Below, piece after piece: positions 23,909 through 64,000 of a stretch of DNA of 64,000 bases; the first letter of the stretch is position 1; each line of letters opens with the position of its first letter. The DNA is from Anthoceros angustus (Eukaryota > Plantae > Anthocerotophyta). The translations under genes and the position numbers were made by a program. The stretch spans positions 260,369 to 324,368 of the forward strand of contig MU008178.1 of the NCBI GenBank assembly GCA_010909165.1. The letters run 5' to 3'. Under the pieces are notes generated by a model that saw only the letters and a list, made by a program, of their open reading frames with translations, had not been told where the DNA came from and searched no databases.

Positions 23909-23958
23909 CTGGATCACATTGTCCAAACTAAGAATGAGTATGGAGAGCCAAAAAGTCC

Positions 23959-24645
23959 AGATCGCAAAGGGTATCACTCCACTCACCTTCACTATCTCAG
24001 GTCGAGAACGAGGAAGGTTGTAAGCAACCAACACACATAAATGGAAAGCCTGCACAGAAACAACTTATCATACAACTAGGTAGAGCCCGTATAATGTGAT
24101 GACAAAAGGGCACAATCACCTTGAAAGGGTCTCCTCTCAATGTCTGCATTTAAAGGGAATTTTTCATACCACGACCTTACAACATAGCACATGCCTGCGT
24201 TAGATTGTTGCAAACTACCTAGTTGTATGATAGTATCATACAACTAGGTAGAGCCCGTATAATGTGATGACAAATGGGCACAATCACCTTAAAAGGGTCT
24301 CCTCTCAATGACCGCACGTAAAGGGAATTTTTCATACCACGACCTTGCAACATAGCGCATGCCTGCGTTAGATTGTTGCAAACTACATATGCTTTGTTGA
24401 CCTGGTAAATCCACCATCAAAGTAACATACCTCCAACGCCACATCCCAAAGACGCCTCCCTGTGTGTGCACAAAGAAATCGTCGACATTCTCCTCACAAC
24501 TTCATGTGATTATGTAATGCCTTCCATTCATATAGTAAGAGCGTAATGATCGCTACTGGGAGCCATGTCAAACATCATATGCAATATGCCATCCACAAAA
24601 GATGTTGCCGACGTGCAACCAATCAAATTTCGGATGATACGTTTA
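23959..24645 (-). pseudogene. Inverted copy of DHU1-like 3' exons with an internal ~170-bp duplication
   Basis: Reverse complement matches 22123-22690 (QHL..DG.LHMMFD, ITGSCEEN, GRG.KNSL, AFH.CVLVAYNLP). 24065-24218 is repeated at 24234-24390. Confidence 0.9.
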
Positions 24646-25715
24646 GATTTCTTCGCACATCTTCTCTCCAACCACCTCATCCGCAAGGACCTCAAATTAA
24701 GATACCTTCGTCTCACTTGGTCCCCATTTCAAAAGGAGGAGTTTTGTGTCAATCCTCCTTTTGGTTTCTAAACTTGTGCCCGCTATCAACTTAGTTCTCT
24801 TCTTTCCTTCAAACTCCGTAAACTCAATTTAGTTAATTGTTAGCTCGCATCACCTCGGGATTGAGACGATGCATGAAAGGCGTTCTTAGGCGGCGATTCG
24901 TGTACGAGGCTAGGGCTCTCTCTACCAAGATGGCTGTTAATCGATATTAGCTAGATAGTTCTATAATGAGGGAGAAAGATTTAGGCAAATGTTTACGATG
25001 TGAGACGATTCCTATCACGGAGTCTTTTTAGATAGACTTGACCATCCGGCTATAATCTATCGGGTTGGATAATCGAAATGAGCAACTTTTGTGTCTAGTT
25101 TGTCGTTTGCAAATAGGTTACAACTTTTCACATCCCGTGAAAGATGGCTTGATTACGATCGTGGTGCAAGTATGCGCGGACATGGTCATAGATACCACCA
25201 AACCTAATTGAAGAGATCACAAGATCTCAACGCAAATGGAGATCAATGTCATGAGTTTTCACCTTCGACCGCCGCCTTTGCCTCAGCTCGAGTGGATCAT
25301 GCTACCGCTAATTGTATTTTTGATCCAACTTTGGAACTCCACAATAGAGAACCTTGGGAAAGATGATTAATCAGAACAAAGGTGCCGGAACAATTTGGGG
25401 TACATCAATATAGTTAGTTGTGATGGACTTGGATCATGTGATTGATAACCCTCATCCAATGATTTTTTTTGTGTTTTAATATTATTTTAACATTATCGCT
25501 CCCAATTCCAAACCCAATCGCCAAAGAAAAAAGAAGATGGTCTTTTATGCCTGAAACATATTGTACTCAATATTTAATTAAATATTAAATATATTTATTA
25601 TCGAGAGTTTGGAATGGAGAAGGCTATATATATGTAGACTTGGGTCTTAAGTCCTCATCCTTTTCGGTCAGGATAAGGTATATGATTATTTGTGATAGAA
25701 AATAGAATTGTCACC

Positions 25716-27627
25716 ATGTTTGTTTGGTTACTTGTATGCTTGTTTAATGTGTCCATATTGTATCACAATGGAGTTGTGATGGCAAACATATTGAGTCTAC
25801 CCCTTGGATGATGCCAACTTCCTCTTAACCAATTTTCAAAGGCCATTCCTCGAATCGCATAATGTATTCCACTTGTTCTACTTTATATTTGTTTGATCCA
25901 ATAGTCTGCTCATCAATGTGCATGTGATTATACAAACGATATTTCTTTTGTTTTCAATGGAGTGATTATGCATGTGACGAACGATAATTCTTTGGTGAGT
26001 GTCCTGCACTTTCGGATGGTACAATCGTAGATTGCGTGAAGATAGAAGATCAATTAACGTTACAACATCCACTTTTGAAGGACATGTTATACAAGTATGT
26101 ATTTATATTCAAGTTACAAGTCATTCTTGTAATCAACAATATCTAGAACATTCAAGTATGGATATTAATATAGTTTTGTTTTGCGAAACCACCGGTTTCA
26201 CTAAGACATAATTATGTGGAGTCCACGAATGTCAAACGTGTAATCCAAATTTATGAACAAGAAGTGGGTTCATGTCCAAAAGGTACCATTCCAATTCAAA
26301 GGTTCACTTACGAGCAAATGAATAGAAGTATAGAAGTGAAGAGGAGAGTCGACATAAGTCGCGAGGTGAAGAGGAGAGTCGACAATGGACGGAGGTCTCT
26401 CCTCATGTTGAAGATGATGGCTTTTTATTTTGAGGTATACTATTCATGGTCCACATTCCATTTTGTTTACACTTAAGGGTATTTGCACGATACTAATGAG
26501 GATAAATTTGCACGGTGATACTAAATATGAATTGACTCGTATGTTTATGTGAGATACAGGCCGTATACTGTACAACAACAAGACTACTTTTATGGAGTGC
26601 GGTGATTAGCATTTGGGATCCGGGAGAGAGAGGTCCAAATGATTTCTCAAGCTCATATATTCGTCTTGAAAGCCGTGGAGACTATGGCGAATATAATGGT
26701 GTTGATATTGGATGGCATGTAAGTCAAAAGGGTATAGTATTTGTTTGTTTTTATAAGCGCAAATGATACATGTACTTATTTTTCTCGCTTGTTGCAATTG
26801 CAGAAATTTCCATTTTGTATTCAAATGACCCTCTACCTCGTTTGTACATTGGATATAAGGTTAGTTCATACACTCATGTGCGTTCCTATATTTAATTATA
26901 TTATTTTGAAAATCAGTTGGGTTCCAAACAACAATCCTTTCATCTTATGTGCGTCCATGTACAACGGGTGTTTTAACTTGTTTTGCGGTTTGTGCAAACT
27001 AATCCGCATTTGTGTTCGTGGTGCTTTCCTCACGATTATGAGGGGACAACTATAAATGCTCGGATAAGCAAAGTAAGTATAACAATCTTTTATCAACAAT
27101 TAGACAACAAAATGGACTTATTGACTCTCCATACTCATTCTTAGTTTGGACAATGTGATCCAGGATTCAAACACGGCTGATTTATGGTTGTTTATTAATG
27201 GACAAGCGGTTGGTTATCGACATCAATATTTGATGGCTTTCTTTCTCTTGAACTATTTAATCACCGGAATGGGAGGCAACCTTGGTATGACAAGTAAATA
27301 TTCGCAAGTCATGTTGGGAAATGGGAGACTAGGGACGATGCTCATGGTCCAAAGAGAGACAGGAGTGTACCGCCTATCAAAAACGGCTTGATGTATTTGA
27401 TGAAGGATGACAAGAATAACATGCGATTCCAAATTTCCTTGATAGAATAGTAATCCATTCAACTTATGAAGACAATTGGAATGGAAAATCATTCTATGTT
27501 CCAGTAGAACAATATTCTTCCGGTATCCGGTTTTTTGGTGGGCGAGTGGTTCGGATACCTTAGTCTCAAATCTTCCTCTTATGAAGCTAGTGAAGATACG
27601 GATGCATTTATGGAAGAAGTGCTATGA
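25716..27627 (+). CDS. Neprosin-like gene copy 1 (signal peptide + activation peptide + neprosin domain); frame broken as assembled
   Basis: MFVWLLVCLFNVSILY; SDGTIVDCVKIEDQLTLQHPLFEGHVIQ; CPKGTIPIQR; AVISIWDPVV..SQAHI..NGVDIGWH; PRLYIGY; GCFNLFC.GFVQTN; VGYWP; WGGN. Indels may be assembly errors. Confidence 0.75.
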
Positions 27628-28205
27628 GAGAAACCCTTGAACCTTTGTCTATCTTTTATATTGTAGCAATGTCTTTTAAAATTTTTCGTTAACGCAGAAC
27701 CGATATAGGATCGGGGATTGTGATTCTAACGTCAGAACAATCCTTGTCCACATGTCATCCAGCAAATTTCTGATTTTGAAGAAACTCCTCTATACCCCAC
27801 CGGCTTAGCCCACGAAGGCCCAATGCGCGTTGGAGCCACCAAGTGGTAAGACAAACAATCCACACAACGCCTCCGCATTAAATCGACGGACTTCAACACC
27901 TAGTTGGTCCAAGTCACTCCCACGCAATTTATGGGAAAGCGGTGTTAAGGATAGTTTTGAATGTCTAACAACAACCCATCACAAACCTCCCCACCAGAAC
28001 CCTTGCAGCAGATTTCAAGAGACTCCGGGGAAAATGAGTGTGATGCACCGAGTTATGTCAACAGCATGGGGCTTGACAGATAATCAATCACGTTCTTGAA
28101 TGTCAAGGCGGACGGGAGGGACCAAAGAACTAAGGATGGACTATTTCACAAAGTTCAAAAAGCGTTGAAGTAAATATGGCGAAATAAACTTGGGCTCCAA
28201 ATGAA

Positions 28206-28868
28206 TCAAGGTCCCATGCTCGCAAGAGATGTATCTGGTTACCTTGGCCACCCTTTGTGCCCTTCACTAGATAGAAGGTTGACCTAAAGCAATTCTAGTC
28301 AAATTGTTTAGTCACAAGCACGACGCAGAGGAGTGGACCAGCGAGCAGATCGCAAAGGGTATCGGCCACTCACCTTCACTATCTCGGTCGAGAATGAGGA
28401 AGGTTGTAGGCAACCAACACACGAAATGGAAAGCTCGCATAAAAAGCGACTTATCATACAACTAGGTAGAGCCCGTATAATGTGATGACAAATGGGCACA
28501 ATCACCTTAAAAGGGTCTCCTCTCAATGACCGCACGTAAAGGGAATTTTTCATACCACGACCTTGCAACATAGCACATGCATAAGTTAGATTGTTGCAAA
28601 CTACATATGCTTTGTTGACTGGTAAATCCACCATCAAAGTAACATACCTCCAACGCCACATCCCAAAGACGCCTCCTGTGTGCATGTAAAAATACGTCGA
28701 CATTCTCCTCACAACTTCATGTGATTATGTAATGCCTTCCATTCATATAGTAAGAGCGTGTAATTATCGCTACGTGGGAGCCATGTCAAACATCATATGC
28801 AATATGCCATCCACAAAGCAGATGTTGCCGTCGCGTGCAACCAATCAAATTCGGATGATATGTTTAGA
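28206..28868 (-). pseudogene. Antisense DHU1-like 3' fragment, unit 1
   Basis: Reverse complement matches 22123-22821. Confidence 0.85.
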
Positions 28869-29936
28869 TTTCTTAGCATCTTCTCTCCAACCACCTCATC
28901 AAGGACCTCAAATTAAGATACCTTCGTCTCACTTGGTCCCCATTTCAAAAGGAGGAGTTTTGTGTCAATCCTCCTTTTGGTTTCTCGCCCAGCCCGCTAT
29001 CAACTTAGTTCTCTTCTTTCCTTCAAACTCCGTAAACTCAATTTAGTTAATTGTTAGCTCGCATCACCTCGTGATTGAGGCGGATGCGGCATGAAAGGCG
29101 TTCTTAGGCAGCCTGATTCGTGTACGAGGCGGCTAGGGCCTGTCTCTTACCAAGATGGTCATAATCGGATATTAGCTAGATAGTTCTATAATGAGGAGAA
29201 AGATTTAGGCAAATGTTTGCGATGTGAGACGATTCCTATCACGAGTCTTTTAGATAGACTTGACCGATCCGCTATAATCTATCGAGGTTGGATAATCGAA
29301 ATGAGCAACTTTTGTGTCTAGTTTGTCGTTTTGCAAATAGGTTACAACTTTTCACATCCCGTGAAAGATGGCTTGATTACGATCGTGGTGCAAGTATGCA
29401 AGGCAGACATGGTCATAGATACCACCAAACCTAATTGAAGAGATCACAAGATCTCAACGCAAATGGAGATCAATGTCATGAGTTTTCACCTTCGTCATCG
29501 ACTTTGCCTCCGGTTGAGTGGATCATGCTACCGCTAATTGTATTTTTGATCCAACTTTGGAACTCCCAATAGAGAACCTTGGGAAAGATGATTAATCAGA
29601 ACAAAGGTGCGGAACAATTTGGGGTACATCAATATAGTTAGTTGTGATGGACTTGGATCATGTGATTGATAACCCTCATCCAATGATTTTTTTGTGTTTT
29701 AATATTATTTTAACATTATCGCTCCCAATTCCAAACCCACGGCCAAAGAAAAAAGAAGATGGTCTTTTATGCAAACATATTGTACTCAATATTTAATTAA
29801 ATATTAAATATATTTATTATCGAGAGTTTGGAATGGAGAAGGCTATATATATGTAGACTTGGTCTTAAGTCCTCATCCTTTTCCAGTCTTGGGATAAGGT
29901 ATATGATTATTTGTGATAGAAAATAGAATTGTCACC

Positions 29937-31861
29937 ATGTTTGTTTGGTTACTTGTATGCTTGTTTAATGTGTCCATATTGTATCACAATGGAGTTGTGA
30001 TGGCAAACATATTGAGTCTACCCCTTGGATGATGCCAACTTCCTCTTAACCAATTTTCAAAGGCCATTCCTCGAATCGCATAATGTATTCCACTTGTTCT
30101 ACTTTATATTTGTTTGATCCAATAGTCTGCTCATCAATGTGCATGTGATTATACAAACGATATTTCTTTTGTTTTCAATGGAGTGATTATGCATGTGGAC
30201 GAACGATAATTCTTTGGTGAGTGTCCTGCGACTTTCGGATGGTACAATCAGATTGCGTGAAGATAGAAGATCAATTAACGTTACAACATCCACTTTTTGA
30301 AGGACATGTTATACAAGTATGTATTTATATTCAAGTTACAAGTCATTCTTGTAATCAACAATATCTAGAACATTCAAGTATGGATATTAATATAGTTTTG
30401 TTTTGCGAAACCACCGTTTCACTAAGACATAATTATGTGGAGTCCACGAATGTCAAGCGTGCAATCCAAATTTATGAACAAGAAGTGGGTTCATGTCCAA
30501 AAGGTACCATTCCAATTCAAAGGTTCACTTACGAGCAAATGAATAGAAGTATAGAAGTGAAGAGGAGAGTCGACATAAGTCGCGAGGTGAAGAGGAGAGT
30601 CGACAATGGACGGAGGTCTCTCCTCATGTTGAAGATGATGGCTTTTTATTTGAGGTATACTATTCATGGTCCACATTCCATTTTGTTTACACTTAAGGGT
30701 ATTTGCACCGATACTAATGAGGATAAATTTGCACGGTGATACTAAATATGAATTGACTCGTATGTTTATGTGAGATACAGGCCGTATACTCTACAACAAC
30801 AAGACTACTTTTATGGAGTGGTGCGGTGATTAGCATTTGGGATCCAGTTGTGAGAGAGGTCCAAATGATTTCTCAAGCTCATATATTCGTCTTGAAAGCC
30901 GGGGAGACTATGGCGAATATAATGGTGTTGATATTGGATGGCATGTAAGTCAAAAGGGTATAGTATTTGTTTGTTTTTATAAGCGCAAATGATACATGTA
31001 CTTATTTTTCTCGCTTGTTGCAATTGCAGAAATTTCCATTTTGTATTCAAATGACCCTCTACCTCGTTTGTACATTGGATATAAGGTTAGTTCATACACT
31101 CATGTGCGTTCCTATATTTAATTATATTATTTTGAAAATCAGTTGGGTTCCAAACAACAATCCTTTCATCTTATGTGCGTCCATGTACAACGGTGTTTTA
31201 ACTTGTTTTTGCTGGGTTTGTGCAAACTAATCCGCATTTGTGTTCGGTGGTGCTTTCCTCATCGATTATGAGGGACAACTATAAATGCTCGGATAAGCAA
31301 AGTAAGTATAACAATCTTTTATCAACAATTAGACAACAAAATGGACTTATTGACTCTCCATACTCATTCTTAGTTTGGACAATGTGATCCAGATTCAAAC
31401 ACGGCTGATTTATGGTTGTTTATTAATGGACAAGCGGTTGGTTATTGGCCGACATCAATATTTGATGGCTTTCTTTCTCTTGAACTATTTAATCACCGGA
31501 ATGGGAGGCAACCTTGGTATGACAAGTAAATATTCAAGTCATGTTAGGAAAATGGGAGACTAGGGATGATGCTCATGGTCCAAAGACAGTTGGTGATGGA
31601 GTGTACCGCCTATCAAAACGGCTTGATGTATTTGATGAAGGATGACAAGAATAACATCTGATTCCAAATTTCCTTGATAGAATAGTAATCCATTCAACTT
31701 ATGAAGACAATTGGAATGGAAAATCATTCTATGTTCACCGTAACAATATTCTTCCGTATCCGGTTTTTTTGGTGGGCGAGTGGTTCGGATACCTTAGTCT
31801 CAAATCTTCCTCTTATGAAGCTAGTGAAGATACGGATGCATTTATGGAAGAAGTGCTATGA
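29937..31861 (+). CDS. Neprosin-like gene copy 2
   Basis: Same exon motifs as copy 1; indels at hotspots. Confidence 0.75.
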
Positions 31862-32431
31862 GAGAGAAACCCTTGAACCTTTGTCTATCTTTTATATTGT
31901 AGCAATGTCTTTTAAAATTTTTCGTTAACGCAGAACCGATATAGGATCGGGATTGTGATTCTAACGTCGTAACAATCCTTGTCCACATGTCATCCAGCAA
32001 ATTTCTGATTTTGAAGAAACTCCTCTATACCCCACCGCTTAGCCCACGCAAGGCCCAATGCGTGCGTTGGAGCCCAGTATGGTAAGACAAACAATCCACA
32101 CAACGCATTCGCATTAAATCCGAGCGGACTTCAACACCTAGTTGGTCCAAGTCACTCCCACGCAATTTATGGGAAGCGGTGTTAAGGATAGTTTTGAATG
32201 TCTAACAACAACCCATCACAAACCTCCCACCCGAACCCTTGCGCAGATTTCAAGAGACTCAGGAAAATGAGTGTGATGCAGAGTTATGTCAACGCATGGG
32301 CTTGACAGAATCAATCACGTTCTTGAATGTCAAGGCGGACTGAGGGACCAAAGAACTAAGGATGGACTATTTCACAAAGTTCAAAAAGCGTTGAAGTAAA
32401 TATGGCGAAATAAACTTGGGCTCCAAATGAA

Positions 32432-33075
32432 TCAAGGTCCCCATGCTCGCAAGAGATGTCTATGATTGCTTGGCCACCCTTTGTGCCCTTCACTAGATAG
32501 AAGGTTGACCTAAAGCAATTCTAGTCAAATTGTTTAGTCACAAGACGCAGTGGACCAGCGATGGAGATCGCAAAGGGTATCGGGCCACTCACCTTCACTA
32601 TCTCGGTCGAGAATGAGGAAGGTTGTAGGCAACCAACACAGAAATGGAAAGCTGCAAAAAGCGACTTATCATACAACTAGGTAGAGCCGTATAATGTGAT
32701 GACAAATGGGCACAATCACCTTAAAAGGGTCTCCTCTCAATGACCGCACGTAAAGGGAATTTTTCATACCACGACCTTGCAACATAGCACATGCCTGCGT
32801 TAGATTGTTGCAAACTACATATCTTTGTTGACTGGTAAATCCACCATCAAAGTAACATACCTCAACGCCACATCCCAAAGACGCCTCCTGTGTGCACAGT
32901 AAAATACGTCGACATTCTCCTCACAACTTCATGTGATTATGTAATGCCTTCCATTCATATAGTAAGGCGTGTGTAATTGATCGTACGGGAGCCATGTCAA
33001 ACATCATATGCAATATGCCATCCATAAACAGATGTTGCCGCACGTGCAACCAATCAAATTCGGATGATACGTTTA
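32432..33075 (-). pseudogene. Antisense DHU1-like 3' fragment, unit 2
   Basis: Reverse complement matches the DHU1 3' end. Confidence 0.85.
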
Positions 33076-34146
33076 GATTTCTTCGCACATCTTCTCTCCA
33101 ACCACCTCATCCGCAAGGACCTCAAATTAAGATACCTTCGTCTCACTTGGTCCCCATTTCAAAAGGAGGAGTTTTGTGTCAATCCTCCTTTTGGTTTCTC
33201 ACCAGTGCCCTATCAACTTAGTTCTCTTCTTTCCTTCAAACTCAGAACTCAATTTAGTTAATTGTTAGCTCGCATCACCTCGGGATTGAGGCGGGTGCGG
33301 CATGAAAGGCGTTCTTAGACGACGATTCGGTGTCGAGGCGGCTAGGGCTCATCTCTTACCAAGATGGTGTTAATCGGCGATATTAGCTAGATAGTTCTAT
33401 AATGAGGAGAAAGATTTAGGCAAATGTTTCGATGTGAGGCGATTCCTATCACGAGTCTTTTAGATAGACTTGACCATCCGGCTATAATCTATCGGGTTGG
33501 ATAATCGAAATGAGCAACTTTTGTGTCTAGTTTGTCGTTTTGCAAATAGGTTACAACTTTTCACATCCCGTGAAAGATGGCTTGATTACGTGGTGCAAGT
33601 ATGCGCAGTATGGTCATAGATACCACCAAACCTAATTGAAGAGATCACAAGATCTCAACGCAAATGGAGATCAATGTCATGAGTTTTCACCTTCGTCTTG
33701 TGACTTTGCCTCCGGTTTGAGTGGATCATGCTACCGCTAATTGTATTTTTGATCCAACTTTGGAACTCCACAATAGAGAACCTTGGGAAAGATGATTAAC
33801 TGTAACAAAGGTGCGGAACAATTTGGGGTACATCAATATAGTTAGTTGTGATGGACTTGGATCATGTGATTGATAACCCTCATCCAATGATTTTTTTTGT
33901 GTTTTAATATTATTTTAACATTATCGCTCCCAATTCCAAACCCAATTCGCCAAAGAAAAAAGAAGATGGTCTTTTATGCCTGAAACATATTGTACTCAAT
34001 ATTTAATTAAATATTAAATATATTTATTATCGAGAGTTTGGAATGGAGAAGGCTATATATATGTAGACTTGCGGTCTTAAGTCCTCATCCTTTTCGGCTG
34101 GGGATAAGGTATATGATTATTTGTGATAGAAAATAGAATTGTCACC

Positions 34147-36066
34147 ATGTTTGTTTGGTTACTTGTATGCTTGTTTAATGTGTCCATATTGTATCACAAT
34201 GGAGTTGTGATGGCAAACATATTGGAGTCTACCCCTTGGATGATGCCAACTTCCTCTTAACCAATTTTCAAAGGCCATTCCTCGAATCGCATAATGTATT
34301 CCACTTGTTCTACTTTATATTTGTTTGATCCAATAGTACATTCATCAATGTGCATGTGATTATACAAACGATATTTCTTTTGTTTTCAATGGAGTGATTA
34401 TGCATGTGGACGAACGATAATTCTTTGGTGAGTGTCCTGCGACTTTCGGATGGTACAATCGTAGATTGCGTGAAGATAGAAGATCAATTAACGTTACAAC
34501 ATCCACTTTTGAAGGACATGTTATACAAGTATGTATTTATATTCAAGTTACAAGTCATTCTTGTAATCAACAATATCTAGAACATTCAAGTATGGATATT
34601 AATATAGTTTTGTTTTGCGAAACCACCGGTTTCACTAAGACATAATTATGTGGAGTCCACGAATGTCAAACGTGCAATCCAAATTTATGAACAAGAAGTG
34701 GGTTCATGTCCAAAAGGTACCATTCCAATTCAAAGGTTCACTTACGAGCAAATGAATAGAAGTATAGAAGTGAAGAGGAGAGTCGACATAAGTCGCGAGG
34801 TGAAGAGGAGAGTCGACAATGGACGGAGGTCTCTCCTCATGTTGAAGATGATGGCTTTTATTTTGAGGTATACTATTCATGGTCCACATTCCATTTTGTT
34901 TACACTTAAGGGTATTTGCACCGATACTAATGAGGATAAATTTGCAGTGATACTAAATATGAATTGACTCGTATGTTTATGTGAGATACAGGCCGTATAC
35001 TCTACAACAACAAGACTACTTTTATGGGTAGTGTGATTAGCATTTGGGATCAGTTGAGAGAGGTCCAAATGATTTCTCAAGCTCATATATTCGTCTTGAA
35101 AGCTGTGGAGACTATGGCGAATATAATGGTGTTGATATTGGATGGCATGTAAGTCAAAAGGGTATAGTATTTGTTTGTTTTTATAAGCGCAAATGATACA
35201 TGTACTTATTTTTCTCGCTTGTTGCAATTGCAGAAATTTCCATTTTGTATTCAAATGACCCTCTACCTCGTTTGTACATTGGATATAAGGTTAGTTCATA
35301 CACTCATGCGTTCCTATATTTAATTATATTATTTTGAAAATCAGTTGGGTTCCAAACAACAATCCTTTCATCTTATGTGCGTCCATGTACAACGGGTGTT
35401 TTAACTTGTTTTGCGCTGGGTTTGTGCAAACTAATCCGGCATTTGTGTTCGGTGGTGCTTTCCTCACGATTATGAGGGACAACTATAAATGCTCGATAAG
35501 CAAAGTAAGTATAACAATCTTTTATCAACAATTAGACAACAAAATGGACTTATTGACTCTCCATACTCATTCTTAGTTTGGACAATGTGATCCGGATTCA
35601 AACACGGCTGATTTATGGTTGTTTATTAATGGACAAGCGGTTGGTTATTGGCCGACATCAATATTTGATGGCTTTCTTTCTCTTGAACTATTTAATCACC
35701 GGAATGGGAGGCAACCTTGGTATGACAAGTAAATATTCGCAAGTCATGTTGGGAAATGGGAGACTAGGATGATGCTCATGGTCCAAGAGGTTGGTGACGT
35801 GGAGTGTACCGCCTATCAAAAGCGGCTGATGTATTTGATGAAGGATGACAAGAATAACATCGATTCCAAATTTCCTTGATAGAATAGTAATCCATTCAAC
35901 TTATGAAGACAATTGGAATGGAAAATCATTCTATGTTCACGTAAACAATATTCTTCACAGTATCCGGTTTTTTTTGGTGGGCGAGTGGTTCAGATACCTT
36001 AGTCTCAAATCTTCCTCTTATGAAGCTAGTGAAGATACGGATGCATTTATGGAAGAAGTGCTATGA
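34147..36066 (+). CDS. Neprosin-like gene copy 3
   Basis: Same exon motifs as copy 1. Confidence 0.75.
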
Positions 36067-50926: not shown

Positions 50927-52847
50927 ATGTTTGTTTGGTTACTTGTATGCTTGTTTAATGTGTCCATATTGTATCACAATGGAGTTGTGATGGCAAACAT
51001 ATTGAGTCTACCCCTTGGATGATGCCAACTTCCTCTTAACCAATTTTCAAAGGCCATTCCTCGAATCGCATAATGTATTCCACTTGTTCTACTTTTATAT
51101 TTGTTTGATCCAATAGTCTGCTCATCAATGTGCATGTGATTATACAAACGATATTTCTTTTGTTTTCAATGGAGTGATTATGCATGTGGAATGACGATAA
51201 TTCTTTGGTGAGTGTCCTGCGACTTTCGGATGGTACAATCGTAGATTGCGTGAAGATAGAAGATCAATTAACGTTACAACATCCACTTTTGAAGGACATG
51301 TTATACAAGTATGTATTTATATTCAAGTTACAAGTCATTCTTGTAATCAACAATATCTAGAACATTCAAGTATGGATATTAATATAGTTTTGTTTTGCGA
51401 AACCACCGGTTTCACTAAGACATAATTATGTGGAGTCCACGAATGTCAAAGCGTGCAATCCAAATTTATGAACAAGAAGTGGGTTCATGTCCAAAAGGTA
51501 CCATTCCAATTCAAAGGTTCACTTACGAGCAAATGAATAGAAGTATAGAAGTGAAGAGGAGAGTCGACATAAGTCGCGAGGTGAAGAGGAGAGTCGACAA
51601 TGGACGGAGGTCTCTCCTCATGTTGAAGATGATGGCTTTTTATTTGAGGTATACTATTCATGGTCCACATTCCATTTTGTTTACACTTAAGGGTATTTGC
51701 ACCGATACTAATGAGGATAAATTTGCGGTGATACTAAATATGAATTGACTCGTATGTTTATGTGAGATACAGCCGTATACTCTGGCAACAACAAGACTAC
51801 TTTTATGGGTAGTGCGGTGATTAGCATTTGGGATCCAGTTGTGAGAGAGGTCCAAATGATTTCTCAAGCTCATATATTCGTCTTGAAAGCCGTGGAGACT
51901 ATAAATATAATGGTGTTGATATTGGATGGCATGTAAGTCAAAAGGGTATAGTATTTGTTTGTTTTTATAAGCGCAAATGATACATGTACTTATTTTTCTC
52001 GCTTGTTGCAATTGCAGAAATTTCCATTTTGTATTCAAATGACCCTCTACCTCGTTTGTACATTGGATATAAGGTTAGTTCATACACTCATGTGCGTTCC
52101 TATATTTAATTATATTATTTTGAAAATCAGTTGGGTTCCAAACAACAATCCTTTCATCTTATGTGAGTCCATGTACAACGGTGTTTTAACTTGTTTTGCG
52201 CTGGGTTTGTGCAAACTAATCCGGCATTTGTGTTCGTGGTGCTTTCCTCACCGATTATGAGGGACAACTATAAATGCTCGGATAAGCAAAGTAAGTATAA
52301 CAATCTTTTATCAACAATTAGACAACAAAATGGACTTATTGACTCTCCATACTCATTCTTAGTTTGGACAATGTGATCCGTGATTCAAACACGGCTGATT
52401 TATGGTTGTTTATTAATGGACAAGCGTTGGTTATTAGCCGACATCAATATTTGATGGCTTTCTTTCTCTTGAACTATTTAATCACACGGAATGGGAGGCA
52501 ACCTTGGTATGACAAGTAAATATTCGCAAGTCATGTTGGGAAATGGGAGACTAGGATGATGCTCATGGTCCAAAGACAGTTGGTGGAGTGTACCGCCTAT
52601 CAAAGCTTGATGTATTTGATGAAGGATGACAAGAATAACATGCTGATTCCAAATTTCCTTGATAGAATAGTAATCCATTCAACTTATGAAGACAATTGGA
52701 ATGGAAAATCATTCTATGTTCATCAGAACAATATTCTTCACAGTATCGGTTTTTTTGGTGGGCGAGTGGTTCGAGATACCTTAGTCTCAAATCTTCCTCT
52801 TATGAAGCTAGTGAAGATACGGATGCATTTATGGAAGAAGTGCTATG
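50927..52847 (+). CDS. Neprosin-like gene copy 6
   Basis: Same exon motifs as copy 1. Confidence 0.75.
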
Positions 52848-53424
52848 AGAGAGAAACCCTTGAACCTTTGTCTATCTTTTATATTGTAGCAATGTCTTTT
52901 AAAATTTTTCGTTAACGCAGAACCGATATAGGATCGAGATTGTGATTCTAACGTCGTAACAATCCTTGTCCACATGTCATCCAGCAAATTTCTGATTTTG
53001 AAGAAACTCCTCTATACCCCACCGGCTTAGCCCATGAGGCCCAATGCGGCGTTGGAGCCAAGTGGTAAGACAAACAATCCACACAACGCGTACCTCGCAT
53101 TAAATCGAGCGGACTTCAACACCTAGTTGGTCCAAGTCACTCCCACGCAATTTATGGGAAAGCGGTGTTAAGGATAGTTTTGAATGTCTAACAACAACCC
53201 ATCACAAACCTCCCACCACGAACCCTTGCAGCAGATTTCAAGAGACTCCGGGGAAAATGAGTGTGATGCACCGAGTTATGTCAGCGATGCGGGGCAACGG
53301 TAATCAATCACGTTCTTGAATGTCAAGGCGGGGCGAGGACCAAAGAACTAAGGATGGACTATTTCACAAAGTTCAAAAAGCGTTGAAGTAAATATGGCGA
53401 AATAAACTTGGGCTCCAAATGAAT

Positions 53425-54085
53425 CAAGGTCCCATGCTCGCAAGAGATGTGTATCATGATTGCTTGGCCACCCTTTTGTGCCCTTCACTAGATAGAAGGT
53501 TGACCTAAAGCAATTCTAGTCAAATTGTTTAGTCACAAGCGTTCGACGCAGAGAGGAGTGGACCAGCGATGGAGATCGCAAAGGGTATCGTGCCACTCAC
53601 CTTCACTATCTCGTGTCGAGAATGAGGAAGGTTGTAGGCAACCAACACCTGAAATGGAAAGCACGCACAAAACGACTTATCATACAACTAGGTAGAGCCC
53701 GTATAATGTGATGACAAATGGGCACAATCACCTTAAAAGGGTCTCCTCTCAATGACCGCACGTAAAGGGAATTTTTCATACCACGACCTTGCAACATAGC
53801 ACATGCCTGCGTTAGATTGTTGCAAACTACATATGCTTTGTTGACTGGTAAATCCACCATCAAAGTAACATACCTCCAACGCCACATCCCAAAGACGCCT
53901 CCCTGTGCACGAAAATCGTCACGACATTCTCCTCACAACTTCATGTGATTATGTAATGCCTTCCATTCATATAGTAAGGCGTGTGTAATTAATTATACTG
54001 GAGCCATGTCAAACATCATATGCAATATGCCATCCACAAGCAGATGTTGCCGTGCAACCAATCAAATTCGGATGATACGTTTAGA
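53425..54085 (-). pseudogene. Antisense DHU1-like 3' fragment
   Basis: Reverse complement matches the DHU1 3' end. Confidence 0.85.
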
Positions 54086-55167
54086 TTTCTTCGCACATCT
54101 TCTCTCCAACCACCTCATCCGCAAGGACCTCAAATTAAGATACCTTCGTCTCACTTGGTCCCCATTTCAAAAGGAGGAGTTTTGTGTCAATCCTCCTTTT
54201 GGTTTCTCGACTTGTGCCCGCTATCAACTTAGTTCTCTTCTTTCCTTCAAACTCCGTAAACTCAATTTAGTTAATTGTTAGCTCGCATCACCTCGGGATT
54301 GAGAGGATGCGGCATGAAAGGCGTTCTTAGGCAGCCTGATTCGGTGTCTGGCGGCTAGGGCTCTGTCTCTTACCAAGATGGGCTGTTAATCGGCGGATAT
54401 TAGCTAGATAGTTCTATAATGAGGAGAAAGATTTAGGCAAATGTTTCGATGTGACGATTCCTATCACGAGTCTTTTAGATAGACTTGACCATCCGGCTAT
54501 AATCTATCGTTGGATAATCGAAATGAGCAACTTTTTGTGTCTAGTTTGTCGTTTTGCAAATAGGTTACAACTTTTCACATCCCGAAAGATGGCTTGATTA
54601 CGATCGTGGTGCAAGTATGCAGCGAGACATGGTCATAGATACCACCAAACCTAATTGAAGAGATCACAAGATCTCAACGCAAATGGAGATCAATGTCATG
54701 AGTTTTCACCTTTAAATGATCGGCTTTGCCTCCAGTTTGAGTGGATCATGCTACCGCTAATTGTATTTTTGATCCAACTTTGGAACTCCACAATAGAGAA
54801 CCTTGGGAAAGATGATTAATCATAACAAAGGTGCGGAACAATTTGGGGTACATCAATATAGTTAGTTGTGATGGACTTGGATCATGTGATTGATAACCCT
54901 CATCCAATGATTTTTTTGTGTTTTTAATATTATTTTAACATTATCGCTCCCAATTCCAAACCCAATTCGCCAAAGAAAAAGAAGATGGTCTTTTATGCCT
55001 GAAACATATTGTACTCAATATTTAATTAAATATTAAATATATTTATTATCGAGAGTTTGGAATGGAGAAGGCTATATATATGTAGACTTGCGGTCTTAAG
55101 TCCTCATCCTTTTCCAGTCTGGGGATAAGGTATATGATTATTTGTGATAGAAAATAGAATTGTCACC

Positions 55168-57091
55168 ATGTTTGTTTGGTTACTTGTATGCTTGTTTAAT
55201 GTGTCCATATTGTATCACAATGGAGTTGTGATGGCAAACATATTGAGTCTACCCCTTGGATGATGCCAACTTCCTCTTAACCAATTTTCAAAGGCCATTC
55301 CTCGAATCGCATAATGTATTCCACTTGTTCTACTTTTATATTTGTTTGATCCAATAGTCATTCATCAATGTGCATGTGATTATACAAAGCGATATTTCTT
55401 TTGTTTTCAATGGAGTGATTATGCATGTGGACGAACGATAATTCTTTGGTGAGTGTCCTGCACTTTCGGATGGTACAATCGTAGATTGCGTGAAGATAGA
55501 AGATCAATTAACGTTACAACATCCACTTTTTGAAGGACATGTTATACAAGTATGTATTTATATTCAAGTTACAAGTCATTCTTGTAATCAACAATATCTA
55601 GAACATTCAAGTATGGATATTAATATAGTTTTGTTTTGCGAAACCACCGGTTTCACTAAGACATAATTATGTGGAGTCCACGAATGTCAAACGTGCAATC
55701 CAAATTTATGAACAAGAAGTGGGTTCATGTCCAAAAGGTACCATTCCAATTCAAAGGTTCACTTACGAGCAAATGAATAGAAGTATAGAAGTGAAGAGGA
55801 GAGTCGACATAAGTCGCGAGGTGAAGAGGAGAGTCGACAATGGACGGAGGTCTCTCCTCATGTTGAAGATGATGGCTTTTATTTTGAGGTATACTATTCA
55901 TGGTCCACATTCCATTTTGTTTACACTTAAGGGTATTTGCACGATACTAATGAGGATAAATTTGCACGGTGATACTAAATATGAATTGACTCGTATGTTT
56001 ATGTGAGATACAGCCGTATACTCGTACAACAACAAGACTACTTTTATGGAGTGTGCGGTGATTAGCATTTGGGATCCAGTTGAGAGAGGTCCAAATGATT
56101 TCTCAAGCTCATATATTCGTCTTGAAAGCCGAGGAGACTATGGCGAATATAATGGTGTTGATATTGGATGGCATGTAAGTCAAAAGGGTATAGTATTTGT
56201 TTGTTTTTATAAGCGCAAATGATACATGTACTTATTTTTCTCGCTTGTTGCAATTGCAGAAATTTCCATTTTGTATTCAAATGACCCTCTACCTCGTTTG
56301 TACATTGGATATAAGGTTAGTTCATACACTCATGCGTTCCTATATTTAATTATATTATTTTGAAAATCAGTTGGGTTCCAAACAACAATCCTTTCATCTT
56401 ATGTGCGTCCATGTACAACGGTGTTTTAACTTGTTTTCTGGGTTTGTGCAAACTAATCCGGCATTTGTGTTCGGTGGTGCTTTCCTCACGATTATGAGGG
56501 ACAACTATAAATGCTCGATAAGCAAAGTAAGTATAACAATCTTTTATCAACAATTAGACAACAAAATGGACTTATTGACTCTCCATACTCATTCTTAGTT
56601 TGGACAATGTGATCCAGGATTCAAACACGGCTGATTTATGGTTGTTTATTAATGGACAAGATTTGGTTGTTGGCCGACATCAATATTTGATGGCTTTCTT
56701 TCTCTTGAACTATTTAATCACCGGAATGGGAGGCAACCTTGGTATGACAAGTAAATATTCGCAAGTCATGTTGGGAAATGGGAGACTAGGATGACGGATG
56801 CTCATGGTCCAACAGTTGGTGACGAGTGTAAGCCTATCAAAAGCGGCTTGATGTATTTGATGAAGGATGACAAGAATAACATCGATTCCAAATTTCCTTG
56901 ATAGAATAGTAATCCATTCAACTTATGAAGACAATTGGAATGGAAAATCATTCTATGTTCCATTGCTAAACAATATTCTTCACAGTATCGGTTTTTTTTG
57001 GTGGGCGAGTGGTTCGAGATACCTTAGTCTCAAATCTTCCTCTTATGAAGCTAGTGAAGATACGGATGCATTTATGGAAGAAGTGCTATGA
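55168..57091 (+). CDS. Neprosin-like gene copy 7
   Basis: Same exon motifs as copy 1. Confidence 0.75.
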
Positions 57092-57159
57092 GAGAGAAAC
57101 CCTTGAACCTTTGTCTATCTTTTATATTGTAGCAATGTCTTTTAAAATTTTTCGTTAAC

Positions 57160-58284
57160 GCACCGATACTAATGAGGATAAACGGTGATACTAAATATGA
57201 ATTGACTCGTATGTTTATGTGAGATACTGGTACTGACAACAACAAGACTACTTTTATGGAGTGTGCGGTGATTAGCATTTGGGATCCAGTTGTGAGAGGT
57301 CCAAATGATTTCTCAAGCTCATATATTCGTCTTGAAAGCCAGACTATGGCGAATATAATGGTGTTGATATTGGATGGCATGTAAGTCAAAAGGGTATAGT
57401 ATTTGTTTGTTTTTATAAGCGCAAATGATACATGTACTTATTTTTGTTGCAATTGCAGAAATTTCCATTTTGTATTCAAATGACCCTCTACCTCGTTTGT
57501 ACATTGGATATAAGGTTAGTTCATACACTCATATGCGTTCCTATATTTAATTATATTATTTTGAAAATCAGTTGGGTTCCAAACAACAATCCTTTCATCT
57601 TATGTGCATCCATGTACACGGGTGTTTTAACTTGTTTTGCGCTGGGTTTGTGCAAACTAATCCGCATTTGTGTTCGTGGTGCTTTCCTCGATTATGAGGG
57701 ACAACTATAAATGCTCGGATAAGCAAAGTAAGTATAACAATCTTTTATCAACAATTAGACAACAAAATGGACTTATTGACTCTCCATACTCATTCTTAGT
57801 TTGGACAATGTGATCCGTGATTCAAACACGGCTGATTTATGGTTGTTTATTAATGGACAAATGATTGGTTATTGGCCGACATCAATATTTGATGGCTTTC
57901 TTTCTCTTGAACTATTTAATCACCGGAATGGGAGGCAACCTTGGTATGACAAGTAAATATTCAAGTCATGTTGGGAAATGGGAGACTAGGGACAGATGCT
58001 CATGGTCCGACAGGTTGGTGGAGTGTCTACCTATCAAAACGGCTTGATGTATTTGATGAAGGATGACAAGAATAACATCGATTCCAAATTTCCTTGATAG
58101 AATAGTAATCCATTCAACTTATGAAGACAATTGGAATGGAAAATCATTCTATGTTCCAACATAAACAATATTCTTCACAGTATCGGTTTTTTTTTGGTGG
58201 GCGAGTGGTTCGACACTTAGTCTCAAATCTTCCTCTTATGAAGCTAGTGAAGATACGGATGCATTTATGGAAGAAGTGCTATGA
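57160..58284 (+). pseudogene. 5'-truncated neprosin-like copy (~1.2-kb internal tandem duplication)
   Basis: The 3' flank TTAACGCA switches to CCGATACTAATGAGG, an internal position of the gene. Confidence 0.8.
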
Positions 58285-58854
58285 GAGAGAAACCCTTGAA
58301 CCTTTGTCTATCTTTTATATTGTAGCAATGTCTTTTAAAATTTTTAGTTAACGCACCGATATAGGATCGGGATTGTGATTCTAACGTCGTAACAATCCTT
58401 GTCCACATGTCATCCAGCAAATTTCTGATTTTGAAGAAACTCCTCTATACCCCACCGGCTTAGCCCACGCAAGGCCCAATGCGTGCGTTGGAGCCACAGT
58501 GGTAAGACAAACAATCCACACATACCTCCGCATTAAATCCGAACGGACTTCAACACCTAGTTGGTCCAAGTCACTCCCACGCAATTTATGGGAAGCGGTG
58601 TTAAGGATAGTTTTGAATGTCTAACAACAACCCATCACAAACCTCCCACCCAGAACCCTTGCAGATTTCAAGAGACTCGGGGAAAATGAGTGTGATGCAC
58701 CGAGTTATGTCAACGCGATCAGGGCTTGGCCAGAATCAATCACGTTCTTGAATGTCAAGTAGGACCGGGGACCAAAGAACTAAGGATGGACTATTTCACA
58801 AAGTTCAAAAGCGTTGAAGTAAATATGGCGAAATAAACTTGCTCCAAATGAATC

Positions 58855-59503
58855 AAGGTCCCATGCTACTTAAGAGATGTGTCTGATTCCTTGGCCACCC
58901 CTTTGTGCCCTTCACTAGATAGAAGGTTGACCTAAAGCAATTCTAGTCAAATTGTTTAGTCACAGCGTTACTGATGAGTGGACCAGCGATGGCGATCGCA
59001 AAGGTCGGGCCACTCACCTTCACTATCTCGGTCGAGAATGAGGAAGGTTGTAGGCAACCAACACACGAAATGGAAAGCTGCACAAAAGCGACTTATCATA
59101 CAACTAGGTAGAGCCCGTATAATGTGATGACAAATGGGCACAATCACCTTAAAAGGGTCTCCTCTCAATGACCGCACGTAAAGGGAATTTTTCATACCAC
59201 GACCTTGCAACATAGCACATGCTGCGTTAGATTGTTGCAAACTACATATGCTTTGTTGACTGGTAAATCCACCATCAAAGTAACATACCTCCAACGCCAC
59301 ATCCCAAAGACGCCTCCTGTGTGCACAAATAAATACGACATTCTCCTCACAACTTCATGTGATTATGTAATGCCTTCCATTCATATAGTAAGGCGTGTGT
59401 AATTAAAACGTACGGGAGCCATGTCAAACATCATATGCAATATGCCATCCACAACAGATGTTGCCGTCGTGCAACCAATCAAATTCGGATGATACGTTTA
59501 GAT
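58855..59503 (-). pseudogene. Antisense DHU1-like 3' fragment
   Basis: Reverse complement matches the DHU1 3' end. Confidence 0.85.
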
Positions 59504-60567
59504 TTCTTCGCACATCTTCTCTCCAACCACCTCATCCAAGGACCTCAAATTAAGATACCTTCGTCTCACTTGGTCCCCATTTCAAAAGGAGGAGTTTTGT
59601 GTCAATCCTCCTTTTGGTTTCTCGACAGCCGCTATCAACTTAGTTTCTTCTTTCCTTCAAACTCAGTAAACTCAATTTAGTTAATTGTTAGCTCGCATCA
59701 CCTCGGGATTGAGGCGGGTGCGGCATGAAAGGCGTTCTTAGGCAGCCGATTCGGTGTCTGGCGGCTAGGGCTCTCTTACCAAGATGGTCGTTAATCGGCG
59801 GATATTAGCTAGATAGTTCTATAATGAGGGAGAAAGATTTAGGCAAATGTTTCGATGTGAGACGATTCCTATCACGGTCTTTTAGATAGACTTGACCATC
59901 CGGCTATAATCTATCGTTGGATAATCGAAATGAGCAACTTTTGTGTCTAGTTTGTCGTTTTGCAAATAGGTTACAACTTTTCACATCATGAAAGATGGCT
60001 TGATTACGATCGTGGTGCAAGTATGCGTGCGAGACATGGTCATAGATACCACCAAACCTAATTGAAGAGATCACAAGATCTCAACGCAAATGGAGATCAA
60101 TGTCATGAGTTTTCACCTTGCCGATTTGCCTCCAGTTTGAGTGGATCATGCTACCGCTAATTGTATTTTTGATCCAACTTTGGAACTCCCACAATAGAGA
60201 ACCTTGGGAAGATGATTAATCAGAACAAAGGTGCGGAACAATTTGGGGTACATCAATATAGTTAGTTGTGATGGACTTGGATCATGTGATTGATAACCCT
60301 CATCCAATGATTTTTTTGTGTTTTAATATTATTTTAACATTATCGCTCCCAATTCCAAACCCAATTACGCCAAAGAAAAAAGAAGATGGTCTTTTATGCC
60401 AAACATATTGTACTCAATATTTAATTAAATATTAATATATTTATTATCGAGAGTTTGGAATGGAGAAGGCTATATATATGTAGACTTGCAGTCTTAAGTC
60501 CTCATCCTTTTCCAGTCTTTGGGGATAAGGTATATGATTATTTGTGATAGAAAATAGAATTGTCACC

Positions 60568-62477
60568 ATGTTTGTTTGGTTACTTGTATGCTTGTTTAAT
60601 GTGTCCATATTGTATCACAATGGAGTTGTGATGGCAAACATATTGGAGTCTACCCCTTGGATGATGCCAACTTCCTCTTAACCAATTTTCAAAGGCCATT
60701 CCTCGAATCGCATAATGTATTCCACTTGTTCTACTTTATATTTGTTTGATCCAATAGTCTGCTCATCAATGTGCATGTGATTATACAAACGATATTTCTT
60801 TTGTTTTCAATGGAGTGATTATGCATGTGGACGAACGATAATTCTTTGGTGAGTGTCCTGCGACTTCGGATGGTACAATCGTAGATTGCGTGAAGATAGA
60901 AGATCAATTAACGTTACAACATCCACTTTTGAAGGACATGTTATACAAGTATGTATTTATATTCAAGTTACAAGTCATTCTTGTAATCAACAATATCTAG
61001 AACATTCAAGTATGGATATTAATATAGTTTTGTTTTGCGAAACCACCGGTTTCACTAAGACATAATTATGTGGAGTCCACGAATGTCAAACGTGCAATCC
61101 AAATTTATGAACAAGAAGTGGGTTCATGTCCAAAAGGTACCATTCCAATTCAAAGGTTCACTTACGAGCAAATGAATAGAAGTATAGAAGTGAAGAGGAG
61201 AGTCGACATAAGTCGTGAAGAGGAGAGTCGACAATGGACGGAGGTCTCTCCTCATGTTGAAGATGATGGCTTTTTATTTTGAGGTATACTATTCATGGTC
61301 CACATTCCATTTTGTTTACACTTAAGGGTATTTGCACGATACTAATGAGGATAAATTTGCAGTGATACTAAATATGAATTGACTCGTATGTTTATGTGAG
61401 ATACAGAGTATACTCAACAACAAGACTACTTTTATGGAGTAGTGCGGTGATTAGCATTTGGGATCCAGTTGTGAGAGAGGTCCAAATGATTTCTCAAGCT
61501 CATATATTCGTCTTGAAAGCCGGAGACTATGGCGAATATAATGGTGTTGATATTGGATGGCATGTAAGTCAAAAGGGTATAGTATTTGTTTGTTTTTATA
61601 AGCGCAAATGATACATGTACTTATTTTTCTCGCTTGTTGCAATTGCAGAAATTTCCATTTTGTATTCAAATGACCCTCTACCTCGTTTGTACATTGGATA
61701 TAAGGTTAGTTCATACACTCATGTGCGTTCCTATATTTAATTATATTATTTTGAAAATCAGTTGGGTTCCAAACAACAATCCTTTCATCTTATGGGTCCA
61801 TGTACAATTGTTTTAACTTGTTTTGCGCTGGGTTTGTGCAAACTAATCCGGCATTTGTGTTCGGTGGTGCTTTCCTCACGATTATGAGGGACAACTATAA
61901 ATGCTCGGATAAGCAAAGTAAGTATAACAATCTTTTATCAACAATTAGACAACAAAATGGACTTATTGACTCTCCATACTCATTCTTAGTTTGGACAATG
62001 TGATCCGATTCAAACACGGCTGATTTATGGTTGTTTATTAATGGACAAGCGGTTGGTTATTGGCCGACATCAATATTTGATGGCTTTCTTTCTCTTGAAC
62101 TATTTAATCACGGAATGGGAGGCAACCTTGGTATGACAAGTAAATATTCGCAAGTCATGTTGGGAAATGGGAGACTAGGGATGATGCTCATGGTCCAAGA
62201 GGTTGGTGTGAGTGTCTGGCCTATCAAAAACGCTTGATGTATTTGATGAAGGATGACAAGAATAACATCGATTCCAAATTTCCTTGATAGAATAGTAATC
62301 CATTCAACTTATGAAGACAATTGGAATGGAAAATCATTCTATGTTCCGATCATAAACAATATTCTTCCCGTATCTGGTTTTTTTTGGTGGGCGAGTGGTT
62401 CGAGGATACCTTAGTCTCAAATCTTCCTCTTATGAAGCTAGTGAAGATACGGATGCATTTATGGAAGAAGTGCTATG
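60568..62477 (+). CDS. Neprosin-like gene copy 8
   Basis: Same exon motifs. A 5-nt deletion at ~61215 shifts exon 3 into the ...SRQWTEVSPHVEDDGFLF frame. Confidence 0.75.
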
Positions 62478-63055
62478 AGAGAGAAACCCTTGAACCTTTG
62501 TCTATCTTTTATATTGTAGCAATGTCTTTTAAAATTTTTTTTCGTTAACGAACCGATATAGGATCGGGGATTGTGATTCTAACGTCGTAACAATCCTTGT
62601 CCACATGTCATCCAGCAAATTTCTGATTTTGAAGAAACTCCTCTATACCCCACCCGGCTTAGCCGCAAGGCCCAATGCGTGCGTTGGAGCCACAGTGGTA
62701 AGACAAACAATCCACAACGTACCTCCGCATTAAATCCGAACGGACTTCAACACCTAGTTGGTCCAAGTCACTCCCACGCAATTTATGGGAAGCGGTGTTA
62801 AGGATAGTTTTGAATGTCTAACAACAACCCATCACAAACCTCCCACCGAACCCTTGCAGCAGATTTCAAGAGACTCCGGGAAAATGAGTGTGATGCACGA
62901 GTTATGTCAATGCAGGGCTTGACGGAGAATCAATCACGTTCTTGAATGTCAAGGCCGGAATGAGGCGGGACCAAAGAACTAAGGATGGACTATTTCACAA
63001 AGTTCAAAAAGCGTTGAAGTAAATATGGCGAAATAAACTTGGGCTCCAAATGAAT

Positions 63056-63705
63056 CAAGGTCCCCATGCTCGCAAGAGATGTGTCTTCGGTTCAGCAGCC
63101 ACCCTTTGTGCCCTTCACTAGATAGAAGGTTGACCTAAAGCAATTCTAGTCAAATTGTTTAGTCTGGCATTCAAGCCGATGGGAGTGGACCAGCGGTGAT
63201 GTGCAAAGGGTATCGTGCCACTCACCTTCACTATCTCGGTCGAGAATGAGGAAGGTTGTAGGCAACCAACACACGAAATGGAAAGCACAACGACTTATCA
63301 TACAACTAGGTAGAGCCCGTATAATGTGATGACAAATGGGCACAATCACCTTAAAAGGGTCTCCTCTCAATGACCGCACGTAAAGGGAATTTTTCATACC
63401 ACGACCTTGCAACATAGCACATGCTGCGTTAGATTGTTGCAAACTACATATCTTTGTTGACTGGTAAATCCACCATCAAAGTAACATACCTCCAACGCCA
63501 CATCCCAAAGACGCCTCGTGTGTGCACAGCAAATACGTCGACATTCTCCTCACAACTTCATGTGATTGTAATGCCTTCCATTCATATAGTAAGGCGTGTG
63601 TAATTACATTTATTAGGGAGCCATGTCAAACATCATATGCAATATGCCATCCACAAGCAGATGTTGCCGTCGTGCAACCAATCAAATTCGGATGATACGT
63701 TTAGA
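63056..63705 (-). pseudogene. Antisense DHU1-like 3' fragment (last visible unit)
   Basis: Reverse complement matches the DHU1 3' end. Confidence 0.85.
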
Positions 63706-64000
63706 TTTCTTACATCTTCTCTCCAACCACCTCATCCGCAAGGACCTCAAATTAAGATACCTTCGTCTCACTTGGTCCCCATTTCAAAAGGAGGAGTTTT
63801 GTGTCAATCCTCCTTTTGGTTTCTCGACTGTGCCGCTATCAACTTAGTTCTCTTCTTTCCTTCAAACTCCAGAACTCAATTTAGTTAATTGTTAGCTCGC
63901 ATCACCTCGGGATTGAGGCGGGTGCGGCATGAAAGGCGTTCTTAGACGGCCGATTGATTACTGGCGGCTAGGGCTCCTCTTACCAAGATGGGCTGTTAAT

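Follow-up and report, generated by a model that had tools for sequence, protein, structure and literature searches.

A tandem array of a 4.22-kb repeat unit, in which a neprosin-like gene is coupled to an antisense piece of the gene DHU1 (DWD hypersensitive to UV-B 1), was found in a 64,000-nucleotide stretch of Anthoceros angustus DNA (GenBank assembly GCA_010909165.1, contig MU008178.1, positions 260,369 to 324,368, forward strand). This whole stretch is called the window below, and all positions refer to it. The array is a real, young and nearly homogeneous tandem repeat of the ordinary gene-amplification kind. In the assembly, its units appear to diverge by 3-5% and to carry broken reading frames. 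Judging from where the differences fall, we think it probable that they are mostly nanopore-type miscalls at methylated CG and CHG cytosines, rather than true mutations.

Anatomy of the array

The array was mapped by self-BLAST of the window and by BLAST of one unit against the window. From 24234 onwards, units of about 4,218 bp follow one another head-to-tail on the + strand as far as the end of the window. The array continues past this end and is at least 40 kb long. Its G+C content is 40%, compared to ~55% in the genic DNA to its left. The original prediction, made from the letters of the window, had described a tandem array of more than 40 kb with a 4.2-kb unit in at least 8 full and 3 partial copies. 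BLAST returned the same unit and arrangement, and the copy numbers are matched by exact-match counts in the window, which gave 8 copies of the exon-1 start and 11 + strand copies of the exon-7 core. The parts of the array are listed here, as placed by BLAST (with unit alignment in addition for sub-array A); numbers in parentheses are unit positions.

24234..45082, +, sub-array A: U1-U4 complete, U5 truncated at unit position 3975
24234-28454, +, complete unit U1
28452-32669, +, complete unit U2
32667-36901, +, complete unit U3
36899-41127, +, complete unit U4
41125-45082, +, truncated unit U5 (1-3975), whole gene kept
45083..49451, +, rearranged zone: partial units, an inverted fragment and a copy of the fold-back variant
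45145-46611, +, large partial unit (2576-4045)
46603-46935, -, inverted 333-bp fragment, within exon 7 (3039-3378)
46927-48753, +, large partial unit (2373-4208)
48759-48906, +, small fragment, the second copy of the variant "1-153 plus fold-back"
48901-49454, +, small fragment (3682-4218)
49452..64000, +, sub-array B: U6, U7 truncated at unit position 3481, a partial unit, U8 and the start of U9
49452-53680, +, complete unit U6
53678-57162, +, truncated unit U7 (1-3481), whole gene kept
57160-59096, +, large partial unit (2254-4218)
59094-63286, +, complete unit U8
63296, +, start of the ninth unit, U9, which runs off the window

The inverted fragment at 46603-46935 is wedged between two partial units and contains an inverted WGGNL-coding core at 46898. 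Tandem Repeats Finder was blind to the 4.2-kb period, and within the array it reported only a 168-bp duplication (1.9 copies) at the start. With head-to-tail units that share the same junction and have high identity, the locus belongs to the class of tandem gene arrays or macrosatellites.

Besides the neprosin-like gene, the unit contains ~1.07 kb of upstream DNA, a ~0.6-kb intergenic spacer and the last three DHU1 exons in antisense. The gene stands at the same phase in U1-U8. An approximate model with seven exons was drawn up for U4 by three-frame reading and GT/AG borders.

38384..40300, +, neprosin-like gene in U4
38384, +, ATG of exon 1, which encodes a hydrophobic, signal-like N-terminus
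~38644-38765, +, exon 2
~38845-39104, +, exon 3
~39229-39383, +, exon 4, encoding VDIGW
39469-39525, +, exon 5
~39582-39737, +, exon 6
~39809-40300, +, exon 7, encoding WGGNL

Exon 1 begins MFVWLLVCLF... in 8/8 units and is signal-like by its hydrophobicity. Exons were searched singly. Exons 2-3 match the neprosin activation domain, Neprosin_AP (PF14365), at window 30221-30736 with an E-value of 1.3e-12 and 48.7 bits against a cut-off of 39.2, the pieces covering profile positions 5-39 and 51-96. The catalytic-domain family, Neprosin (PF03080), was matched by exon 7 of a relic gene copy that lies just left of the array (9.2e-10; 38.7 bits, cut-off 22; positions 92-213 of the 214 in the profile). 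The match of exon 4 to this profile is weak (positions 2-31, 13.7 bits). Within exon 3, 30 bp are directly duplicated in frame (30547-30605 and the corresponding site of the other units); the two copies are 86% alike and repeat a VKRRVD-type peptide. On the opposite strand, tblastn gave DHU1 matches to the last three exons in every unit. The coupling of a neprosin-like gene to an antisense DHU1 fragment, as first proposed, is thus borne out by Pfam and tblastn.

Differences between units

Raw identity between units is ~95% by BLAST and ~97% by substitutions alone. Each unit differs from the consensus by ~75 substitutions and ~60 one- or two-base indels, and transitions are about as frequent as transversions. 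Variants shared among units occur in every possible pattern and give no tree. The variation is clustered in parts of the unit and is nearly absent from the AT-rich parts, so that unit alignments consist of scrambled motifs (CCAGG, CCTGG, CCGG, GCTG and CG runs) between long letter-identical stretches. Exons that lie in AT-rich parts are letter-identical across all copies. No unit reads through as assembled, and exon 7 contains 5-11 frame-breaking blocks per unit compared to the relic, nearly all of them at CG/CWG motifs.

The differences were measured against distance from CG and CHG. With sites defined on the consensus, the proportion of variable positions among six units is 42% at CG/CHG and 2.9% more than 10 nt away. 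In pairwise comparisons, substitutions amount to 10.3% within 2 nt of CG/CHG and 0.22% beyond 5 nt, and gaps to 9.3% and 0.5%, respectively, the latter mostly differences in homopolymer length. Columns near CG alone are variable in 25% of cases and those near CWG alone in 35%, compared to 1.7% of columns more than 5 nt from both. Cytosines in the CHH context away from CG/CHG showed no rise in variability (3.7%). Altogether, 85% of the variable columns fall within the 29% of columns that adjoin CG or CWG, and the ratio of transitions to transversions there is 171:181. Sites that read CAG or CTG in the relic often read CGG or C-G in the array units. Part of the "CG" in the array may be miscalled CWG.

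Methylation motifs have been described as a leading cause of consensus errors in nanopore data (PMC6591954). A liverwort assembly made from nanopore reads only, such as that of Apopellia (PMC12885004), is an example of data in which this pattern could arise. If the differences are miscalls at CG/CHG, the true units would be ~99.8% identical, since columns more than 5 nt from these sites differ by 0.22%. The same figure upholds the earlier observation that AT-rich stretches are letter-identical between copies. From the site specificity of the errors, we infer that methylation in CG and CHG contexts is probably dense and that the array is probably transcriptionally silent repeat DNA.

A different explanation is that the differences are real, and that the array is an older, decayed set of pseudogenes in which methylated cytosines mutated independently in each copy. 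Variation is indeed concentrated at CG/CHG, where deamination of 5-methylcytosine acts, and some changes between the relic and the array are clean CG-to-CA or CG-to-TG changes. However, deamination gives only C-to-T transitions, whereas transitions and transversions are about equal here, and indels of 1-2 nt are nearly as common as substitutions at the same motifs. The scrambling of motifs also differs from unit to unit, while the DNA between motifs is 99.8% identical. Furthermore, the CpG observed/expected ratio of the array is 0.79-0.83, which is not depleted compared to the relic, at 0.55. We consider this explanation very improbable.

Several points weigh against miscalling at methylated sites as a full account. 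Methylation is read here from an error pattern. The CG/CHG sites were partly defined on the same noisy copies, which is somewhat circular, although the test with sites defined only on the consensus agrees. The majority consensus of six units keeps frameshifts compared to the relic and does not have open exons, so some miscalls must be systematic or some breaks real. In exon 7 there are at least 2 sites where nearly all units differ from the relic. One is a CCTGG site, at which two of the eight units differ by a full codon, and another, near the 3' end, is a block of +1 to +3. Some of the frame breaks may therefore be genuine, and the array may have been founded by a copy that was already a pseudogene. 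Both the length of the array and the inversion junction at its start are known from a single assembly. Lastly, one tract in U4 is not predicted by noise at methylated sites:

40005..40172, +, 168-nt tract in U4, letter-identical to relic 23561-23728 (sequence comparison)

It is without the CG/CHG noise seen in other units, is twice as long as the longest match to the relic in any other unit, and has relic-type bases at two reliable sites. It could be either a gene-conversion tract or a consensus patch.

The sites more than 5 nt from CG/CHG were also used to compare ages. The relic and the array consensus differ at 2.3% of them (17/728), compared to 0.22% between units. This contrast makes the founder copy of the array roughly tenfold older than the most recent round of amplification or homogenization, and it agrees with the very recent amplification or homogenization that had been proposed for the array.

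Source locus, junction and growth of the array

The DNA from which the unit was copied adjoins the array on its left. The features of this region, together with the antisense DHU1 fragment of one unit, are as follows.

20153..22818, +, DHU1, mapped part (Pfam, tblastn)
22124..23959, -, source-locus segment, homologous to the unit and inverted relative to the array (BLAST)
23423..23926, -, neprosin-like relic, exon 7 only, 167 codons plus stop, open as assembled (Pfam, PDB alignment, gene model)
23959..24233, +, head-to-head junction and start of the array (BLAST, Tandem Repeats Finder, sequence inspection)
32667..33077, -, antisense DHU1 fragment, example from U3 (tblastn, junction inspection)

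DHU1 exons were mapped by tblastn with hop and fern DHU1 proteins at 20153-21445, 21519-22055, 22156-22353, 22434-22646 and 22738-22818, where they are collinear and in frame. The exon map starts after the first ~50 codons, which lie further upstream. Pfam found DHU1_N (7.4e-25) plus WD40/beta-propeller matches, and 178 homologues among seed-plant and fern proteins are 38-50% identical. The source segment corresponds to unit positions 417-47 and 4218-2891 with a raw identity of 88-90%. The final three exons of DHU1 lie in it, separated by ~600 bp from exon 7 of the convergent neprosin-like gene. Its homology to the unit ends at 22124, which, according to the exon map, falls in the intron before the third-last DHU1 exon.

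All units have one novel junction in common, at which GATACGTTTAGA is joined to TTTCTTCGCAC. GATACGTTTAGA is present in 9 units and occurs once more, inverted and with one mismatch, at 22124-22135, where 0.18 chance matches are expected. TTTCTTCGCAC follows it directly in 6 units. In U3, the segment 32667..33077 and the last ~260 bp of the preceding unit make up the last three DHU1 exons, and the novel junction is at 33077/33078. A single novel junction within a DHU1 intron had been predicted, and both the exon map and the motif search confirmed it.

The prediction that the array is inverted relative to a parental pair of convergent DHU1 and neprosin genes held in part. The inversion is present (22124-23959), but the parental neprosin-like gene is not whole, as only exon 7 is left. 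The source copy ends at 23959, which equals unit position 2891, ~20 bp into intron 6 of the gene model. The relic, which also aligns to Nepenthes neprosin in the PDB (7ZU8/7ZVB), appears to be what is left of the original neprosin-like gene, with the remainder lost at the inversion break at 23959.

Position 23959 is where the inverted source gives way to + strand unit sequence, beginning with unit position 4114; unit 4114-4218 occupies 23959-24068. Next comes an additional copy of unit 1-153 (24066-24218), at whose end the first bases of the unit fold back over 18 nt (24215-24232). This variant, ACTACCTAGTTG, which past unit position 153 continues with the beginning of the unit in reverse complement, is found only at 24214 and 48902. 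Its presence at just the array start and the rearranged zone suggests that larger blocks of the array underwent a further duplication.

These features suggest the following order of events. The unit would have been copied from the meeting point of the two convergent genes, the neprosin-like gene and DHU1. A first tandem duplication would have joined the DHU1 intron to the neprosin upstream region and so made the one novel junction. The array may then have been expanded and homogenized by unequal exchange or replication slippage. An inversion or fold-back would have set the array head-to-head with its source, sparing only exon 7 of the original gene; this last event is read from one assembly only.

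The original prediction also raised the possibility of a circular intermediate. A 4.2-kb segment could have been excised as extrachromosomal circular DNA (eccDNA), copied by a rolling circle and re-inserted as a concatemer beside its source in one step. The identical single junction in every unit and the star-like relations of units with ~0.2% divergence are consistent with this, and the junction is compatible with a rolling circle without being specific for it. However, a single junction fits tandem duplication with unequal exchange and rolling-circle copying equally well, and homogenization yields the same near-identity. Tandem duplication predicts an array right at its source, which is where this one sits, but a re-inserted concatemer could land anywhere. 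The partial units and nested duplications also show that exchange-type events took place. Exchange-type processes are favored by the position of the array, its partial units and the nested duplication, and an origin from a circle in one step seems somewhat unlikely.

Capture of the gene pieces by a transposon (Helitron, Pack-MULE or long terminal repeat element) does not fit the array, in which units abut directly and the junction bases misfit Helitron ends. A search of a unit for terminal repeats, inverted or direct, was negative, and Rfam and tRNA scans found no RNA genes in it.

The array could also be an artefact, in which a smaller repeat was over-expanded or mis-joined during assembly, so that the copy number, the rearranged zone and the 23959 junction would be unreal. 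The assembly is plainly noisy within the array, and the noise-free tract of U4 that is identical to the relic could be a patch from another locus's reads. In contrast, a structure with several distinct breakpoints is unlikely to come from a simple assembler loop. The fold-back variant occurs at exactly two places, 24.7 kb apart; the array is joined cleanly to unique, well-read DHU1; and each unit has its own noise pattern. We find an artefact on this scale unlikely.

Further to the left, the window contains other genes and repeats. A BRO1/ALIX gene at 8449-10365 (+) consists of a single 639-codon open frame with a BRO1 domain (E 1e-112), and its protein shares 82% identity with those of three liverworts and 81% with Sphagnum. 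Together, the searches with BRO1 and DHU1 put the host among the bryophytes, though neither brought up a near-identical protein. The first part of this frame, upstream of the BRO1 domain, contains a purine-rich 49-bp tandem repeat (8509-8650). An exon of red chlorophyll catabolite reductase lies at 14808-15422 (+; Pfam E 2.2e-63). A tandem repeat of 87 bp with 2 copies and 88% matches is present at 2804-2977.

The encoded protein and related systems

Neprosin has a catalytic pair of glutamates, E188 and E297, and the E188Q and E297Q mutants are inactive (PMC9343461). Both residues are replaced in the array protein. In the PDB alignment to Nepenthes neprosin, Asn stands opposite E297 (EWGGNL compared to EWGGEI), and Asp stands opposite E188 (VDIGW compared to TIEAGW). 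The latter alignment was obtained with a 59-residue piece of U7 exon 4 (E 0.0036), for which neprosin chains were the sole PDB matches; a PDB search with a shorter, 51-residue piece of exon 4 did not find neprosin. The sequence that holds the Asp and Asn codons is free of noise, and all copies have the same codons. With its catalytic pair replaced, the protein falls outside the active neprosin-type glutamic peptidases (MEROPS G3). It can be described as neprosin-like but not as a canonical glutamic peptidase, and is unlikely to act as one.

The array protein is very divergent. A word-index protein search with relic exon 7 gave no match. HMMER with the same query gave 17 matches at E <=0.001 among 1.84 billion representative proteins, and the best of these was 38% identical over exon 7 (E 6.8e-10). 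Ten of those 17 were scanned with Pfam and all 10 belong to the neprosin family. Among the nearest library relatives, WGGE is usual, and N, Y, Q, K, C and D are also present after WGG. The pair is missing elsewhere as well: 3/6 of the DUF239 clusters of Arabidopsis are without an E/E or Q/E pair (PMC12806958).

Amplification could be adaptive if the copies were expressed and the dosage of the secreted protein were selected. Each unit keeps the whole gene, its ~1.07 kb of upstream DNA and the signal-like N-terminus, and the AT-rich exon parts are letter-identical in all copies. There are also expressed tandem clusters of neprosin-like genes in Arabidopsis (PMC12806958). Against this, the methylation footprint extends across the entire unit, upstream region included, the protein lacks the catalytic Glu pair, and no copy reads through as assembled, with the frame breaks described above in exon 7 alone. 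An adaptive amplification is unlikely as well. Dosage selection for a secreted protein, which had been suggested as possible for this array, finds no support, given the probable dense methylation of CG and CHG across the unit and Asp and Asn in place of the catalytic pair.

Another idea concerns DHU1, a regulator of the UV-B response. The neprosin-like gene is convergent with the antisense DHU1 exons in every unit, so read-through transcription would make double-stranded RNA. The locus could be the birth of a gene-bearing macrosatellite beside its source genes, in which small RNAs from this double-stranded RNA maintain methylation of the array and also act in trans on the intact DHU1 gene, linking copy number to DHU1 output. 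We regard this as a long shot.

Arabidopsis is already known to have neprosin-like genes in tandem clusters, so the locus itself is biologically modest. What the adjacent source copy adds is a view of how an array is born, including its breakpoints, the gene pieces that were co-amplified, and the age contrast of 0.2% to 2.3%. For methodology, the array would be a clear case in which between-copy "divergence" and "pseudogenization" are really the imprint of CG/CHG methylation in a long-read assembly. Within such arrays, this assembly would then give wrong repeat ages, pseudogene calls and gene counts.

Nepenthes neprosin (7ZU8/7ZVA/7ZVB; PMC9343461) shares the Neprosin_AP and catalytic-domain families with the array protein, and local motifs align, including VGYWP, EWGG and xIGW. 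They differ in the catalytic pair, with E188 changed to Asp and E297 to Asn in the array, and overall similarity is low.

In Arabidopsis, DUF239 cluster IV consists of eight genes in strict tandem over ~20 kb of chromosome 4 (PMC12806958). As in the array, these neprosin-like genes lie head-to-tail in one orientation and have seven exons and six introns. The cluster IV proteins are predicted to be secreted, and the array protein has a hydrophobic, signal-like N-terminus. The catalytic pair is neither E/E nor Q/E in cluster IV and is D/N in the array. In contrast to the array, cluster IV is made up of diverged paralogues with individual seed expression. The array has units that are probably ~99.8% identical, a foreign DHU1 piece, a methylation footprint and a bryophyte host.

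Gene-bearing macrosatellites are known from humans, with D4Z4/DUX4, and from Marchantia, with male-chromosome repeats that carry a small RING gene. The array resembles both in its kb-long, homogeneous head-to-tail units with one gene each, and probably also in being methylated. Unlike either of them, it adjoins its source locus, so the origin of its unit and the junction that defines it can be read directly.

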